This document shows, piece after piece, positions 2,448 to 10,900 of a stretch of DNA of 64,000 nucleotides (positions are counted from its first letter, which is position 1; the number at the start of each line of letters is the position of its first letter). The stretch is from Mantamonas sphyraenae STR306. Taxonomy: Eukaryota; Protista; CRuMs. The DNA is taken from NCBI GenBank assembly GCA_026936335.1, contig JAPMXV010000015.1, positions 124,001 to 188,000 on the forward strand, given 5' to 3'. A program made the translations under genes and the position numbers. A model generated the notes under the pieces. It worked only from the letters and a program-made list of their open reading frames with translations. It had not been told where the DNA came from and made no database searches.

Positions 2448-3434
2448 CTAAGCGTTGTACAGGCGCAGGAGACTGTTCATGGGCGACGGCTGCCTGCACA
2501 GCGGACACTCAGGCTTGGATGCACACCATTCGGTGATGCACTGCCAACAAAACACATGGCCACACGGCGTGGCTGTGCTGTTGCTGCGTGCATCCAGGCA
2601 CATGGCACACTGTACATCCCGTTCCACTTCCACGTCGCCGCCGTCCAGTCGGTGGCCCACCTCGTGCCTGTTCTCGGCCATCTCCTCACTGGCTGATATC
2701 TCCCTGCCCTCTTCGTCCAGCACAGGCACCCTGCGCCCGCGGTTGCTCAGCTGCTCCACTTTGAGGTAGAAGGAGATGCCCAGTTGGACCACCAGCAGCA
2801 GGCCAAGCAGCCGATATGCAGGCGTTTGCAGCTGCTTGGCCACTTCCTTCCCACTCCCCGTGGCCTTTATCCGTGTGTACGCGTACTCTTGGCCACACAG
2901 CCTGCTGGCCACCTCAAAGTAGCGTCCGTCCAGGTAGAACAGCGCAAGGTGCAGCTGTTGCACCAGTTCCAGACCCTTGGCCACCGATGGCAGCCATTCC
3001 ACAACCTTGGCCAACCCTCGTTCCCATTGGCTACTTGCCCTTCCTTCCATCTCCGCCTGAGTGGCCATGCGGAACACAGCCTGCTGCAATCTGCTCGCCG
3101 TCCGCTCGGCCACGTATGGGCACACCACACTCAGAAACATCCACGTGGCCCGTTGCCCTCTGCTCGTCGGTCTCCTTCTACCCTCCCCATCCCTGTGCAC
3201 CTGCATCACATCCACAAACTCTTCGCCCAGCGTCTGCTCCTTGCTGCTGGCAAACACCGCCCAGTACGCAAGCTGCGTTGCCAGCCGCACGGGCTTTTCC
3301 ACAATCGCAAACTCCCGCTGGCCCAGCACCTGCCGTCCCACCTCCAACACCTCTTGTTCCAACAACGTCCGGTACATTGAATCCTTCTGCACGCACCGCA
3401 CCACCTGCGGTTGCGACGCCGACGGAAACTCCAT
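2448..3434 (-). CDS. PEX10: Peroxin 10 (Pex2/12 N-terminal domain + C3HC4 RING), 328 aa
   Basis: MEFPSASQPQVVRCVQKD, QTLGEEFVD, LHLALFYLDGRYFEVASRL and the C-terminal CAMCLD...TPCGHVFCWQCITEW...ECPLCRQ motifs. Confidence 0.93.
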   Translation of the reverse strand: MEFPSASQPQVVRCVQKDSMYRTLLEQEVLEVGRQVLGQREFAIVEKPVRLATQLAYWAVFASSKEQTLGEEFVDVMQVHRDGEGRRRPTSRGQRATWMFLSVVCPYVAERTASRLQQAVFRMATQAEMEGRASSQWERGLAKVVEWLPSVAKGLELVQQLHLALFYLDGRYFEVASRLCGQEYAYTRIKATGSGKEVAKQLQTPAYRLLGLLLVVQLGISFYLKVEQLSNRGRRVPVLDEEGREISASEEMAENRHEVGHRLDGGDVEVERDVQCAMCLDARSNSTATPCGHVFCWQCITEWCASKPECPLCRQPSPMNSLLRLYNA

Positions 3435-3507
3435 CTCTCTCTCTCTCTCTCTTTCCACTCTTTCCTTTGCCTCCTCCTGTGCACCCTCCTCCACTTTCGA
3501 GCACCCA

Positions 3508-6500
3508 TCAATCCCTGCGGTTGCGTCCTCCCTTCTTCTTTCGTGGCGCCCCTCCGCCTCCCGGTGCAGAGAATGTGTGTCCTCCGCCGCCTCCTCCGCC
3601 GCCTCCACCACCTCCCGCTGCGCTTCTTCCACCTGCGCTTCGCGTGCCACGACGCGATGGCGTCGATGTCGAACTTGACGTTGTTGTCGATCCCGATGAG
3701 CGCCCTGCAAACCGGCTGCCTCCTCCCTCGCGTCCTCCATCACGTCCTCCGTCGCGGTCGTTCCTGCCACTCGAGCCACCTCCGAATCGCCCTCCTCCTC
3801 CGCTGCTGCTCTTGTTGTTGCTGCTGCTGTTGCGTCCTCCTCCTCGGCTGTTCCCTCCATCCGATCCACTCCTGCCAAAGCGTCCGCCGCCTCCGCCGCC
3901 CCGCTCGTCCCGCTCGTCGTTGTTGTTTCTTCCTCCTTCGCTGCGGAACCGTCCGCTCCCGCTGCGTGCCCGGCCTCCGCCATTGTTGCTTTGGCTGTCG
4001 GCCTTCTCATCACGACGCGATGACCCACTGCGCCGTCCAGAGAATCGGCTTCCTCCAGACGATGATTCGTCCTCGTTGTTGCGATCGTCACGTCGAGACG
4101 ATCCGCTGCGACGTCCAAACCTGCCACCACCCTCCTCTTCGTCATCCTTCTTGTCATCCCTCCTCGACGATCCGCTTCGCCTCCCGAAACGACCACCACC
4201 CTCCTCCTCGTCATCCTTCTTGTCATCCCTCCTCGACGAGCCGCTGCGACGTCCGAACCTGCCTCCACTTTCCTCCTCGCCATCCTTCTTGTCATCCCTC
4301 CTCGACGAACCTCGGCGTCCAAAACGACCACCACCCTCCTCTTCGTCATCCTTCTTGTCATCTCTCCTCGACGAGACCGCTGCGGCGTCCGAAACGACCA
4401 CCACCCTCCTCCTCGTCATCCTTCTTGTCATCCCTCCTCGACGAGCCGCTGCGACGTCCAAACCTGCCTCCACTTTCCTCTTCATCATCCTTCTTGTCAT
4501 CTCTCCTCGACGAACCGCTGCGGCGTCCGAAACGACCACCACCCTCCTCCTCGTCATCCTTCTTGTCATCTCTCCTCGACGAACCGCTGCGCCTGCTGCC
4601 AAACCTACTCCCGCTGCTTTCTTCCTTCTCGTCTTTCTCCTCATCCTTGTCGTCGTTTCCACGCCTGGACGATCCACTCCTCCGTCCAAACCGTCCGCCC
4701 GATCCACTCTTGTCATCCTCATCCCCCTTCTTGTCTTTGTCTTCTTTGTCCTTGTCGCTGCTGCGTCGCCCAAACCTGCTGCTGCGGCTGCTTCCACTGT
4801 CTTCCTTTCCATCCCCTTCCTTGTCCTCGTCTTCGTTGCGCTTGCCAAACCTGCTGCTTCCGCTACGCCGCGAAGACCCAGACTTGCCCTTGTCCGACTC
4901 GTCTGCGTCTGCATCCTTGTCTTTTTCCGTGTTGTCGCCCTTGCTGCTTCCGCGTCGCCCGAATCGGCTGCTTCCGCTGCGCGAGCTCTTCTCTTCCTCG
5001 TCCTCTCCGTCCTTGTCCTTGTCCTTGTCCTTCTTGCCCGCCGTCTTGTCCTCCTCCTTGTCCCCTTCCTTCTTCCTGCCGAAACGGCTGCTGCCTCGAG
5101 AACTTCTCTTCTTCTCCCCATCCTCCTTGTCCTTGTCCTTGTCCTCCTCCTTATCCCCCTCCTTTTTCCTGCCAAATCGGCTGCTTCGCAAGGAACTGCC
5201 TTTCTTCTCTCCGTCTCCGTCCTTCTTGCTCTTGTCTCCATCCTCGTCCTCGTCCTCGTCGCCGTCCTTCTTCTTGCGTCCAAACCTACCCGACGTGCGC
5301 CTGCTGCTGCTCTTTTCCTCCTTGCCCTCGCTCTCCTCATCGTCCTCGTCGCCCTCCTCCTTGCCACGCCTGCCCAGACGCGCACTGCCTCCTCCACTTG
5401 CGGCTTCTGCCTTTTGCTTGGCCCTCTGTTCACGTCGCTTGCGCGCCTCCTCCGCCTTTTTGCGTTCCTCCTCTGCCTCGCGCTCCTTCTTGGCCACCTC
5501 TTCAAACGCCTGGTTCTTCAGCTCCTCCACTCGCTTGTCCTCCTCCTCTTCCTCGTCGTCCATTGTCACCTCCCTGTTGAATCCGTACGGCGATCCGATG
5601 AACGAAAACGGGTCGCGTTCCACCAGACTCTGCTCCGTGTTTTCCTCCGTCTCTTCGATGAGCAGCTCGTGTGCTGCCAGTGGCGTTTCTTCTGCGTCTG
5701 CCACTGCCTGCTTCTTGCTTCCACCCGTCTCGCCGTCGTTGTCGTCTGCTCCCACTGTGCTGCCTCCGCGTGCTCGCTTGCCCCGACGCGGCTGACCTCC
5801 CTGTACATCCTCACCCTTGCCCTCCTCTGTCTTCATGGATGAGGTGGCGGTGGCGGTGGCGGTGGCGCTTTGCTTTGCTTCGTTCGCTTTCTTTGCGACC
5901 ACGCTTGCCCCGCGTTCTCGCGCGGGGCGTTTGCGGTTCGACCCTGGCACGTACGGTGCAAATCCACTTGCCACGCCGCCCACCTCGCCGCTTGCGTCCT
6001 CCATCAGATCGCCGTCGCTTGTGCCTGCGACTGCACCAGAGCCCACTGTGGCTGTGTTGCTTCGCTTTCGTACGCTGCGCGTCGTGCTCAGCGGCCCTGC
6101 TTCCATGCGTGTGCTACCCACTTGGTCTTCTTCGTCCATGGCAACCTTGTCCACGTCTCCTGACGCCGTAGCCACGTCGTCGTCGTCCTCCGGAAGCAGT
6201 CCAAGGCGAACGTCGATTCGCCGCTTGACTTGTCGTGCGGTGCTCTCTTCGGCCTCTTCAGCAACAGAGGCGCCGTCGTGCCCATCCTCGTCGGGTCGGC
6301 TGCGTCGTTTCTGTCCGGCCTCGCTCGGCACAGGCGTTGCCAGCGCCGATGAGTGTCCCTGTATGGCCTTGCCACCCTTGTTCTTTTTGTTCTTCTTGCC
6401 ATTGCGTGCACCTGCTGCGGCCTTGGGCGTGCCTCCGCTCAGAATCTCGGCAATGGATTCCGGTGCGCGTCGTTGGCGCTTCTTTGCGCTCATGCTCAGC

Positions 6501-7797
6501 GTCAGCAGGTGGTCCTCGTGTGCATCCATGCTCTCGTCCAGCCCATCCTCGTCCTCGTCCATGGTTTCACGCTTGCGTCCCACAACCACGGGCGTCCTGG
6601 ACGCCAGCGACGCACGCGTGGCTCCGGACGTCAGGATGCCCAAATCCGCAGCGGAAACAACACTCGAGGCGTTGGACAATGTCGACGATGCACGCTTGCG
6701 AGTCGTCGTGCGAGGTACCACAGGCACGCCAGAGGGCGTGGACACACTGGTCTCGTGCACACCTGTCAACAGCGCTTCGGACGTGTTCAACGCAAGCGGA
6801 CGCCGGTTCAGAGGCGACACGAGCGTCTCACGCGCAGACACCTCCTCCTGCACCGGGAGGCTCGTATCCAACAGGCTGCGTGTGTGTTTGTTTGTGTTGC
6901 GCCGCCGGTAATCCACTGACGACGCCACAAGTGCTCCGTTTCCGCTTCGGTTTCCAGAAGACCCGGGCGTTCGCGGCCCACCTGTCCCATTCCCGCCCAC
7001 AATGCTTCCACTGGGCGTGCTTGCCAGGTGGAACGAGGCCCCAATGCCTTCACCGCTGCGTTCGCTACCGACTGCGTTTACGTCTCCAGATGCTGTGCGC
7101 CTCAACGCGCTTCCGCTCAACATCTCGCCTCCTCGCCCTGGCGTCCCTGTGCGGTTGCCGTCGTGAGTGTACGTGTGCGTGAGTGTGCGGTGTCAGCGCC
7201 CATGCGTTGATTGATCCCCCCTCCCTTGCCACAGCCGTGCTCCACTCCGCCTCGCTTCCATGCGTTCAAATCCGGCTGTTCCTGCAGCCGTTGATCGCTG
7301 CGCGCGGACTTTGCCTTGTCGACCTCTCACAACCTACCCATCGATGTGGTGCGCCCCAGCGGCGTACGTGCCACTGCTCCGTGGCCACTTGCATCTCTAG
7401 CACTTGCAGACGCTGCATTGGTGACTGCTCCCATGCGTCGTGGCGTCCTTGCCGGCGTTTTGACGCTGCGCATTTTCACGCGCTTTCTTCGCTGGCCTGC
7501 CGCAGAGCCCACTGCAGGCGTCCCTGCATCTCCTCGCTTGCTCTGTGCATCCGTGCCTCGCTTGAACGGCGTTGCACTGCTCTTGTTCGCCCCCTTGCTG
7601 TCCTTATTCATCATCTGCTGTACCCATGCGCTCAGTTGTGCGCGATTCCTACTCCCGAAATCCGCCCTCGTGTCAGGAACTCTTCCCAAGCGACCCCAAA
7701 CACGCCCACGCCCCACACCTCTCCCTGCACACCCCTCCCACACAACTCACAAGTAGGCAACCACTGCCACCAGTACGACAAACACCAGTGTCCACAT
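3508..7797 (-). CDS. N-terminally membrane-anchored disordered protein with RFG repeats, candidate transmembrane FG-nucleoporin; complement(join(3508..7146,7338..7648,7751..7797)), ~1331 aa after removing one extra base at ~4375
   Basis: Exon 1 MWTLVFVVLVAVVAY ends at a GTGAGT donor. Phases match through two CTGAC-containing introns into ORF 4358..7123, which continues in the 3508..5505 frame after a 1-nt insertion inside the repeat. Confidence 0.75.
4090..4590 (-). repeat. Coding tandem repeat, 69-nt unit (GGGRFGRRSGSSRRDDKKDDEEE), about 7 copies
   Basis: Recurring tcatccttcttgtcatc(c/t)ctcctcgacga unit on the + strand. Confidence 0.9.
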
Positions 7798-7986
7798 CCC
7801 GAGCAGCGAATTTCTCTTTGCTCTCTAACCGCACGAGCTCGTGGCCACACCCCATGGTCAAATGCCTCCAACCCGTGGAAACAACGCAACATTGCAATGA
7901 AATTCCATCTCATCTCCACCCACCCCTGGCTTTCGCCGGAAAGCGTGCCATCTCTCACGCCGAACCAAGAAATCTGCCAATCCATC
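7798..7986. promoter_or_regulatory. Divergent promoter (189 nt) shared by the TM-RFG gene and CAP-D2; E2F-like TTTCGCCG at 7931..7938
   Basis: Head-to-head start codons at 7797(-) and 7987(+); the motif fits the WTTSSCSS E2F consensus. Confidence 0.45.
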
Positions 7987-10900
7987 ATGTCCACGTTTCA
8001 GATTCCCGTACATCCCGAGGATCTTGCCCTGGACCTTGACGAGCGCTACTGCGTGCAACAGGAGCTGTGTGAAGAGTTTGCTGCCCTGTCGCGCCCCAAG
8101 CAGATGGCCCATCTTGACGGTACGTGGCCTGATCTGCCCGTCCGCGCCTTTTCGCCTTGTCCGCTCGCAACACAAAACGCGCACTCACACGTTCCCTACG
8201 CATCTTCACCCACAGATGTGTTTGCCACCCTGTCTGCGCCTCTTCGCATCGCCGAGCACGAGCAGTTTGACACGCTGTACTACTGCGTGAGGTGAGTTGC
8301 ACGCCGTTGGCGCGCTTTTGCGCGTGCGATCGCTCAACGTTCACCGTCTCAAAATCCGGCCGCTGACACCTGGGCCCCGTTCCTTTCAACCACACGCCAG
8401 CGAGCTGCACACACTTGCACCCTCGGTGCAAAACAAGTTTGTGCAGGGTATGCATGCAACATTCACATCCTTCTGTGTGTCGCTGGCCGACGTGAGCGCA
8501 GACGCAGCTGGCATGACTCAGCACAAGAGCGCGCTGGAGATGTTTGTGTTCCTGATTACCTGGTCTTTGCAACAGAACCTTAACGGCGACGCTGTCGGTA
8601 CCGGGGCAGACGCAGATGTTTCTGTGGCCGGTCCATCAAAGGGGCGTGGCAAGAAGAAGGCCAGCAAGAAGAGTGCTGCAAGTGCCAGCGAACACGCGGG
8701 CGAGCTGCTGGAGCTCTTTGTGTCGGCGCTGACGGCCTCGCTGCGACAAAACCTGGCGCGCTTCTGGAACCTGGTAGTGCCGCAGGACGACTTTATGTCG
8801 CTGTACACACGCGTTCTCTACGACATGCTGGAGAACGCCGAGGCTCTGAAGAATGCCGGGGTTCGAGACGAGCTGTGTGCCATGTTCCACCTGCTTCTCT
8901 CGCGCTACAATCACAACATCGCCGCCGTGACCAAAACGGTGCACCTGTTGTGCAACTCACCAGTGGCTTCGGGCTTCCTGGGCCAGCTGGCTGTGTACCT
9001 GTGCAAGCAGGAAGGCAACGCCGGCCCGCAGTTTGTCGCCGAAGTCGTCCGTGAGATCGGCCACATGGAGAGTGCCGACGTGGCACGCGAGGCCGGTGCC
9101 GCCAAGAACCTGGGCGTGTTCTTGACCGACGTGGCCGAGGGAGCACCGCGTGTGGTGTACGGCACGCTGGCATTGCTGTTGAACCACCTGGACGGCGAGT
9201 CGTACATGATGCGCAACGGCATCGTGACCATGATTGGCAAGCTGATTTGCTTTGACGTGCCTGCCGACGACAAGAACCGTGCCTCGCTCATCACCAACCG
9301 CGACATGCTCTTGGAGGTGTTGATTGCACGCGTCGCCGACGTCAACGCCTACGTGCGCTCCAAGGTGCTCCAGACCTGGACTGCCATCTGCGAGGAGCGC
9401 AAGATCCCAGTGGCTCAGTTGCAGGCTGTGGCTGACCTGGCTGTGGGGCGTGTCACCGACCGTTCGGCAGTCGTGCGCAAAAACGCCATCCATCTGCTCA
9501 CCACCCTGCTCGAGTACAATCCGTTCAGCGACAAGCTGGACCTGGTGCTCTTCAAGACTCGCCTTGCCGAGATAGAGACCACAATGCAGGCCGAGGTGGA
9601 GAAGCAGAAGGAAAAGGCCACCGAGGCGCTCAAGCAGGCACAAGCGCAGCAGGCTGCCCAGGAAGGAGAGGACAAGGAAGAAGATGGGGAGGATGAACTT
9701 GACGTGGAAGAGTTTGACGTGGAAGAGAAGGAGGATGAGGATGATGATGAGGAGGTGGAGGAGGAGGAGAAGCAGCAGCAACAGAGCGTGGAGGATGAGG
9801 AGGAAGAAGAGGAGGAAGGCAAGGAGGAAAGCGGAGAGGAGCAGGAGAAGCGGCTGCAGGCTCTGCTGTTTACGTTTGAGTACCACCAGCAAGCAGTGGC
9901 GTTTATCACAAGCATGCACGAGACGGTGCCTGTGCTGAGCGAGCTGCTGGGCTCCAAGAACGCGACCGACGTGTTGGAGGCGGTTGGCTTCTTCATTGCC
10001 GCCAAGCAGTTTGGTATCCCGGGCGTGTGGCAGGGCATCCGCAAGATGATGATGCTGGTGTGGTCGAAGGAGGAGTCGATCAAGAACGGTGTGGTGGCCG
10101 CGTACCAGACGCTCTTCCTCGACGTCAACGCCGATGGGGAGCGCTTCTCGCGTGCACACGCCGGTCAGGTGTGTGCCAACCTGATTGAGCTGGCCCTGAG
10201 TGCCACGCTGGCCGAGCTGACCTCCATGGAGCAGCTGCTGGGGGATTTCCTGGCACGCAAGATGATTCCGCTCAGCGTGGTGAAGACGCTGTGGGACGTG
10301 TTTGAGGGAAGCAGCAGCAGCCAGCAGTCGCGTGGTGCCTTGATGGTGCTGACAATGCTGGGTGCAGCCGATGCGTCTGTGCTGCGCGCCAAACTGGACG
10401 TGCTGGTGGAGCTTGGCCTGCGCAAGGCGGTTCAGAACAGCGACTGGTTCACGGTGCGCTACGCGTGCATCGGACTTCAGCAGTCGCAGCAGGGCGCACC
10501 GCGTCGCCCTGCATCGGACGACCTCTTTGCCGTCCTGCACACGGTTGTGTGTGCCCAGGGCGTCGACGACGTCGCGTGGACGGCCGCGGCCGAGCAGGCC
10601 ATCAACCTCGTGTTTCGCGTGTGTGAGCAGCCGGGTGACGTGTGCGAACGCATGCTGGTGGCTCTGACAGACGCTCTGGCGGACAGCGAAAGCGGAAGCG
10701 AAGCTGAGAGCGACGTCGAGGCTGAGGAGGAGGAGAACGAGACGGACGCAGACGACACACCGGCCAGCAACGCGCAACTGTGGAAGTTGACGCAGCTGCT
10801 GATGGTGTGCGGCCACACAGCCATCAAACAGCTGGTGTTTGTGGAGGAGATGCAGAGCGAGTATGTGAACGCCAAGCTCAAGGCGTCGCGCAAGGTGGAA

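Follow-up and report, generated by a model that had tools for sequence, protein, structure and literature searches.

A minus-strand gene at 3508..7797 of a 64,000-nucleotide stretch of the Mantamonas sphyraenae STR306 genome (contig JAPMXV010000015.1, positions 124,001 to 188,000 of the forward strand; the whole stretch is called the window below) appears, with a confidence somewhat better than even, to encode a lineage-specific, single-pass membrane-anchored nucleoporin of the phenylalanine-glycine (FG) type. A membrane-tethered pore protein is its most likely identity because the recognizable pore proteins of the organism use the same Arg-Phe-Gly motif (R-F-G, or RFG) that is repeated along its C-terminal part; the motif is strong circumstantial evidence for pore residence, not proof of it. 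The initial annotation, a first reading of the letters of this DNA, had taken R-F-G for a nucleoporin-type FG motif of a kind peculiar to this gene. The first half of that view is supported by five recognizable FG-nucleoporin (FG-Nup) homologs of the genome that use R-F-G. The second half has to be given up: RFG is the general FG flavor of the organism's recognizable FG-Nups. What emerges is a deep-branching CRuMs lineage with Arg-Phe-Gly in every recognizable FG-Nup examined and, besides these, an orphan RFG protein of large size with a predicted membrane anchor.

The repeat domain of the candidate and its youngest part lie as follows:

3694..5299, minus strand: RFG-repeat (FG-type) domain, aa ~736-1270, with 20 [S/G]-R-F motifs, 17 of them followed by Gly
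4097..4591, minus strand: youngest part of the tandem array, a 69-nt (23-aa) unit in 7.2 copies (Tandem Repeats Finder, 84% matches)

Counting thus bears out the roughly 20 S/G-R-F-(G) motifs with K/D/E spacers described at the outset (20 R-F, 17 R-F-G), and their number is beyond chance: Arg stands before Phe in 20/21 cases in the repeat domain versus 21/437 in the window background (Fisher p ~1e-22), and RFG is absent from the 15,413 aa of the other long open reading frames (ORFs) of the window. The R-F motifs are spaced 22-40 aa apart by spacers made of basic (RR/KK, S-rich) and acidic (D/E) blocks. The last 596 aa contain 21 Phe, a single I/L/M/V, no Trp or Tyr and no Cys, a residue missing from the whole protein. 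Five codons, AGG, CGT, CGA, CGG and CGC, drawn from both Arg codon families, encode the Arg before Phe, and the Phe and Gly codons vary too; the motif is therefore kept by selection, not by recent duplication alone. The candidate thus has, like FG-nucleoporins, a long disordered domain with many FG motifs and Phe as the dominant hydrophobic residue.

For comparisons within the organism, a genome of 25.06 Mb in 78 contigs was searched, the window having a GC content of 59.2%; the published FALCON assembly of M. sphyraenae is given as 25.06 Mb, 78 contigs and 59.19% GC (PMC10492846). Its Nup98-96 homolog (L008:2196-8243, minus strand; G000:C49 ~426.2-432.2 kb) has an autoproteolytic domain (135 bits), together with a GLEBS-like motif alignable to Nup98s of insects and other organisms. 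The open frame that encodes the autoproteolytic domain also encodes 14 FG motifs, 11 of them RFG and none GLFG, and an R/S-rich tract. The FG region of this protein is 32% charged, with a net charge of +0.17 per residue, and the same part of 13 other Nup98 homologs from plants, animals, apicomplexans and fungi has 0.1-2% Arg and 2-11% charged residues, figures that leave aside one homolog with almost no FG motifs in the region. The remaining FG-Nup homologs follow suit. Upstream of its PF05064 domain, the Nsp1/Nup62 homolog carries SRFGR, RSFG and RKFG motifs whose K/D/E spacers are close in style to the older repeats of the candidate; the Nup54 homolog has three SRFG ahead of its domain; the Nup58 homolog combines SRFG, SGFG and GGFG with KD spacers N-terminally and three SRFG C-terminally within the same ORF; and a RanBD protein (Nup50/Nup2/RanBP3 type) has SRF[G/N]RK motifs in the same ORF as the RanBD. 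Pooled over the five homologs, Arg precedes Phe in 28/42 cases versus the background of 21/437 (p 7e-22). The glycine-arginine-rich (GAR) domain of fibrillarin from the same genome, taken as a control, is classical, with 19 RGG in 85 aa and no RFG: the candidate shares its motif flavor with the FG-Nups of its own organism, and the control does not. The likeness of the charged spacers to Nsp1-type repeats, also claimed initially, holds within Mantamonas itself, whose Nsp1 and Nup58 have K/D/E spacers too.

The flavor extends beyond one species. The only database relative of the Nup54 homolog is Mantamonas plastica Nup54 (P0014; EukProt EP00003_Mantamonas_plastica_P021714). The helical domains share 49% identity, and the N-terminus of the M. 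plastica protein is R/S/G-rich, with SGFG motifs besides SRFG and GGFG ones that are flanked by Arg. Because this N-terminus has SRFG and GGFG, the RFG flavor is conserved within the genus.

Nup98 FG domains of all eukaryotic clades have been described as being under extreme selection against charged residues, with GLFG prevalent (Ng et al. 2023, PMC9918544); arginines are extremely depleted in FG domains, and Arg on cargo favors entry into FG phases (PMC9918544). The predicted FG region of Mantamonas Nup98-96 contradicts features described there as pan-eukaryotic, and our literature searches (SRFG with nucleoporin; Mantamonas with nucleoporin) found no paper describing Arg-flanked RFG nucleoporins. 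It is tempting to speculate, and we would put the chance at rather less than even, that the whole permeability barrier of Mantamonas has been remade from charge-rich, Arg-flanked R-F-G repeats, the candidate having arisen independently as the membrane-tethered protein with the largest RFG domain. If so, the transport receptors should have co-evolved with the barrier, which would be held together partly by Arg-Phe contacts and not by purely hydrophobic GLFG cohesion. As for the receptors themselves, five of the eight IBN_N matches in the genome matched the solved importin-4, importin-9, exportin-5, Kap120 and CAS, and for two others the sequence by itself suggests CRM1 and importin-7; none of the eight was identified as importin-beta1. 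In the NTF2 family, the match with a single ORF resembles p15/NXT1; a second short gene with an NTF2 domain is divided between two open frames. Should the candidate reside in the pore, it would amount to a natural experiment on how FG context and charge relate to selectivity, on receptor-barrier co-evolution and on the number of times that the POM121 layout arose. The RFG signature also offers a practical means of tracking down the FG-Nups of the lineage, which evolve fast and otherwise escape detection.

The claim of a membrane anchor depends on the 5' end of the gene. Contigs from four public runs (X1-X4) were aligned to 3300-8100 of the window, which gives the following structure:

3508..7797, minus strand: gene with three exons and two introns; stop codon at 3508-3510
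7751..7797, minus strand: exon 1, ATG at 7797; 15 hydrophobic residues plus a Leu via a split codon; predicted signal-anchor or transmembrane helix
7649..7750, minus strand: intron 1, 102 nt, GT..AG; X3 contig joint 7647->7750, cut +1
7338..7648, minus strand: exon 2, basic and S/T/A-rich; net charge +17 over 103 aa; five S/T-P sites; patch resembling a nuclear localization signal (NLS) at 7438-7494
7147..7337, minus strand: intron 2, 191 nt, GT..AG; X3 contig joint 7145->7337, cut +1
3508..7146, minus strand: exon 3, stop codon included; unbroken only without the extra base at 4375
4375, minus strand: extra base within the 69-nt tandem array, causing a +1 frameshift of the window sequence; omitted in the X3 (depth 252) and X4 contigs

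A single 1796-nt X3 contig covers 5715-7145, jumps to 7337/8-7647/8, jumps again to 7750/1 and continues for 54 nt more. X3 depth is 0 over 7164-7324, inside intron 2, and over the intergenic stretch 7808-7968, so that X3 behaves as RNA. The hidden 5' exons 7751..7797 and 7338..7648, which had been postulated from the open frames, are thus joined by an RNA-like contig across GT..AG ends, and this one contig accounts for both introns as well as for the hydrophobic first exon. Downstream of an in-frame stop at 7827-7825, the first ATG is that at 7797. The base at 4375, on which the initial annotation is silent, is not present in the other copies of the 69-nt repeat, and the DNA runs X1 and X2 yielded no contig spanning 4375 or the tandem array; it is probably an assembly indel. 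Once it is dropped, the product is one continuous protein of 1331 aa. Sequence searches and analyses were run on its pieces, exon 1, exon 2, exon 3a (4376-7144) and exon 3b (3511-4374), and residue positions in the full protein were calculated arithmetically from these.

Outside the repeats, three further features stand out in the translation:

5576..5614, minus strand: short hydrophobic motif DPFSFIGSPYGFN, aa 631-643, the sole aromatic cluster outside the repeats
5393..5554, minus strand: E/K/R-rich, highly charged single helix, aa 651-704, predicted by single-sequence AlphaFold2 (AF2) and read as a spacer
3511..3579, minus strand: C-terminal HTFSAPGG motif and basic tail PRKKKGGRNRRD

The elements listed by the initial annotation, namely a hydrophobic start, NLS-like patches, TP/SP sites and an HTFSAPGG motif running into a basic tail, are all found. 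Residues 1-16 are uncharged and rich in V/L/F/A, and the rest of the protein has no other hydrophobic segment; the 15 residues of exon 1 have a Kyte-Doolittle mean of +2.55 and a summed Hessa biological hydrophobicity of -1.66 kcal/mol. Basic, NLS-like patches read QRRKRVK, KKRQRR and RKRPAR. The 14 S/T-P sites are divided between the 103 aa after the anchor (five) and aa 121-630 (nine), a region that is disordered by composition, has a predicted local distance difference test score (pLDDT) below 50 in the single-sequence AF2 model and contains more K/R patches. In that model, of the 620 aa before the repeats, the helix occupies piece residues 531-584 at pLDDT 84-95, and the remainder stays below 50. 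Genome-wide, H[TA]FSAPG matches fall in open frames only in the candidate and in a paralogue-like gene on contig C51 (the C51 paralog); one other match is out of frame and contains a stop codon. Neither Pfam on the exon pieces nor the AF2 model revealed a scaffold-binding domain in the candidate, which leaves the N-terminal hydrophobic segment as the only candidate for a pore anchor. Because the N-terminus is short and uncharged and its C-terminal flank strongly positive, we infer that the segment would insert into the membrane with the bulk of the protein on the cytoplasmic/pore side.

How might such a protein work? The uncharged hydrophobic segment (aa 2-16) would serve as a signal-anchor, and the strongly basic flank would keep the C-terminal 1300 residues on the cytoplasmic, pore or nucleoplasmic side. 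Through the NLS-like basic patches, importins could carry the protein to the pore membrane or inner nuclear membrane or retain it there. The disordered linker of ~600 aa, with the charged single helix, would then place an FG-type domain of ~550 aa in or near the channel, where the Phe of each RFG may bind nuclear transport receptors and the flanking Arg may complement acidic receptor surfaces and possibly add Arg-Phe cohesion.

Proteins other than those of the pore have RFG as well. A scan of the 25 Mb with DNA patterns made of three RFG codon triplets, in three spacing ranges, picked out few loci: the candidate, Nup98, Nup54, the C51 paralog, two ankyrin-repeat proteins and a giant UBA-containing protein, besides a few isolated matches, some of which are simple repeats. 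The C51 paralog (L010:3913-8167, minus strand; G000:C51 ~424.9-429.2 kb) is an RFG/KFG protein with 15 RFG and a basic C-terminal tail, and has in common with the candidate the repeat unit GGRFG.R.GSSRR.DK..D/E (64% over 25 aa) and the H[TA]FSAPG motif. Pfam finds no domain in this protein, nor was a hydrophobic or transmembrane segment seen in it; upstream of the gene, one hydrophobic match proved to be a poly-Ser tract translated out of frame. Near L010:6100 the gene overlaps an upstream ORF lying in a different frame, and a frameshift or small intron within a longer protein is probable; BLASTP of the N-terminal 620 aa of the candidate against this upstream ORF gave no similarity. The two ankyrin-repeat proteins (L014:4203-8138, plus strand; L015:1649-5650, minus strand) are paralogous, ~1300 aa long, and bear N-terminal tandem SRFG/RGFG/GSFG (or SGFG/SRFG/NTFG) motifs with S/T/N-rich spacers, an FG-Nup-like arm on an ankyrin body. 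The giant protein (L016:583-9900, minus strand; G000:C70) exceeds 3100 aa; besides a UBA-like segment and a tract of GGFG and poly-Gly, it has ~9 basic RFG motifs in scattered positions. One triple-RFG locus, G000:C51:569860 (~569.7 kb; L017:4725-5798, plus strand), was rejected as an FG array: it is a collagen-like G-X-Y repeat instead (Pfam Collagen, 71.7 bits), which reads GRF-GRR-GRW-GRK-GRK and is extremely basic and of triple-helix type. A further gene (L018:3603-7929, plus strand; G000:C15 ~293-297 kb) has a long tandem array of SSFDGGFDAFGSNNNEQQQPQQQK units followed by NPF/NPFG, with several frameshifts between the repeat blocks, and looks more like an endocytic-adaptor-type tail than like a nucleoporin.

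Several of these observations, together with the searches for relatives, weigh against a membrane-anchored FG-Nup. The RFG arrays on two ankyrin-repeat proteins and a giant UBA/HECT-type protein mean that the motif alone is not diagnostic of pore residence. A motif spacing of 22-40 aa and a charged fraction of 0.4-0.6 place the array towards the loose and non-cohesive extreme of FG domains, and the hydrophobic core of the anchor has only 15-16 residues. Exhaustive phmmer against 1.84e9 representatives, M. plastica proteins included, returned no homolog of the candidate, and PF15229, the POM121 family, matched neither its exon pieces nor anything in the 25-Mb genome at E<=1, an absence that is weak in an exon-wise six-frame search. 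The same holds for PF09531 (Ndc1), not detected in the genome by this exon-wise approach. Nor did the other searches add a relative: Pfam on three exon pieces gave nothing above threshold (ArfGap, sub-threshold, E 0.31), a word-indexed protein search with exon 3a no match, an ESM Atlas feature search no usable match and a scan of metagenomes with the 620 aa outside the repeats no relative.

If RFG served generally as a short linear motif or as a 'sticker' of condensates, the candidate could be a membrane-anchored scaffold of the endoplasmic reticulum (ER) or inner nuclear membrane and no pore component at all. ER proteins such as p180/RRBP1 combine an N-terminal anchor, a basic region and tandem repeats, a layout that the candidate recalls; RFG/FG arrays do occur on the unrelated ankyrin-repeat and UBA-like proteins, and the lack of a scaffold-binding domain in Pfam and AF2 fits as well. 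On the other side, the nearest spacer chemistry is that of the organism's Nsp1 and Nup58 FG regions, the candidate has multiple NLS-like patches, and its array is the longest pure RFG array of the genome; we consider such a scaffold unlikely. A soluble or peripheral FG-Nup of the Nup153/Nup1-like basket, whose hydrophobic stretch merely dips into the membrane or goes unused, is more doubtful still. The short hydrophobic core would suit it, as would the C51 paralog, with the same repeat unit and H[TA]FSAPG and no hydrophobic segment seen. Against it stand 15 consecutive uncharged residues, mostly V/L/F/A, with a Kyte-Doolittle mean of 2.55 and no amphipathic character, in an exon that is spliced into the mRNA and opens at the first ATG past the in-frame stop. 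Over its final ~150 aa the array is rich in G/R/S (GGGGRFGGG, GGRDGGREGGG), as would be expected of an RGG/GAR-type RNA-binding or nucleolar protein whose Arg-methylated C-terminus binds RNA. The candidate has, however, only two RGG in 596 aa versus 19 in the 85-aa fibrillarin GAR, itself without RFG, and hence lacks the dense RGG of that class, of which acidic K/D/E spacers and an N-terminal anchor are likewise atypical, making this a slender prospect. Secretion, with the N-terminus as a cleaved signal peptide of a surface repeat protein, is the least credible: small residues behind the hydrophobic region (VVA, NRA, LSA) could form a signal-peptidase site, but the net charge of +17 in the 103 aa after the segment, the lack of Cys, the NLS-like patches and a motif identical to that of nuclear pore proteins all speak against it.

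The head-to-head neighbor named by the initial annotation, condensin CAP-D2, is confirmed by a Cnd1 match of 188.9 bits; the start codons of the two divergent genes are 189 bp apart (window 7798-7986), and since only this distance separates them, a bidirectional promoter is probably common to both. Downstream of the candidate, 2451-3434 (minus strand) encodes a Pex2/Pex12-type RING peroxin. The PacBio-based assembly has single-base frameshifts inside repeats, at window 4375 and probably at L010 ~6100.

Finally, we would like to place the membrane-anchored FG-Nup favored here among known systems. The POM121-like layout of the initial annotation (N-terminal transmembrane segment, NLS region, C-terminal FG repeats) is present as read from hydropathy and motif patterns only, and the further suggestion of deep homology is not supported, with no PF15229 match in protein or genome. 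Like vertebrate POM121 (PF15229), the candidate would have an N-terminal hydrophobic anchor, a basic NLS region, a long disordered body and FG-type repeats in its C-terminal third; in contrast to the mostly uncharged FG repeats of POM121, it has R-F-G with highly charged spacers, and the charged single helix ahead of the repeats is its own feature. In Tetrahymena, TtPom121 is an FG Nup with an N-terminal transmembrane segment and C-terminal FG repeats that localizes to pores (PMC5450191). The layout predicted for the candidate thus recurs outside vertebrates; the repeat flavor of TtPom121 differs from RFG. Because membership of POM121 fails the only available sequence test, the candidate is filed, by analogy of layout, as an architectural analog of POM121/TtPom121 and not as a family member. 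With the GAR/RGG domains of fibrillarin and nucleolin it has in common an R/G-rich composition and Phe as the sole hydrophobic residue, whereas their tripeptide is RGG, not RFG, and they are without acidic spacers. Nsp1 differs in having a C-terminal coiled-coil anchor (PF05064), missing in the candidate, and the yeast motif is FSFG, not RFG. Yet the regular single-motif repeats with long, highly charged K/D/E spacers are common to the yeast Nsp1 FxFG domain, Mantamonas Nsp1 and Nup58 and the candidate, and the Mantamonas Nsp1 unit, SRFGRKK followed by D/E/K, nearly matches the candidate's older repeats.

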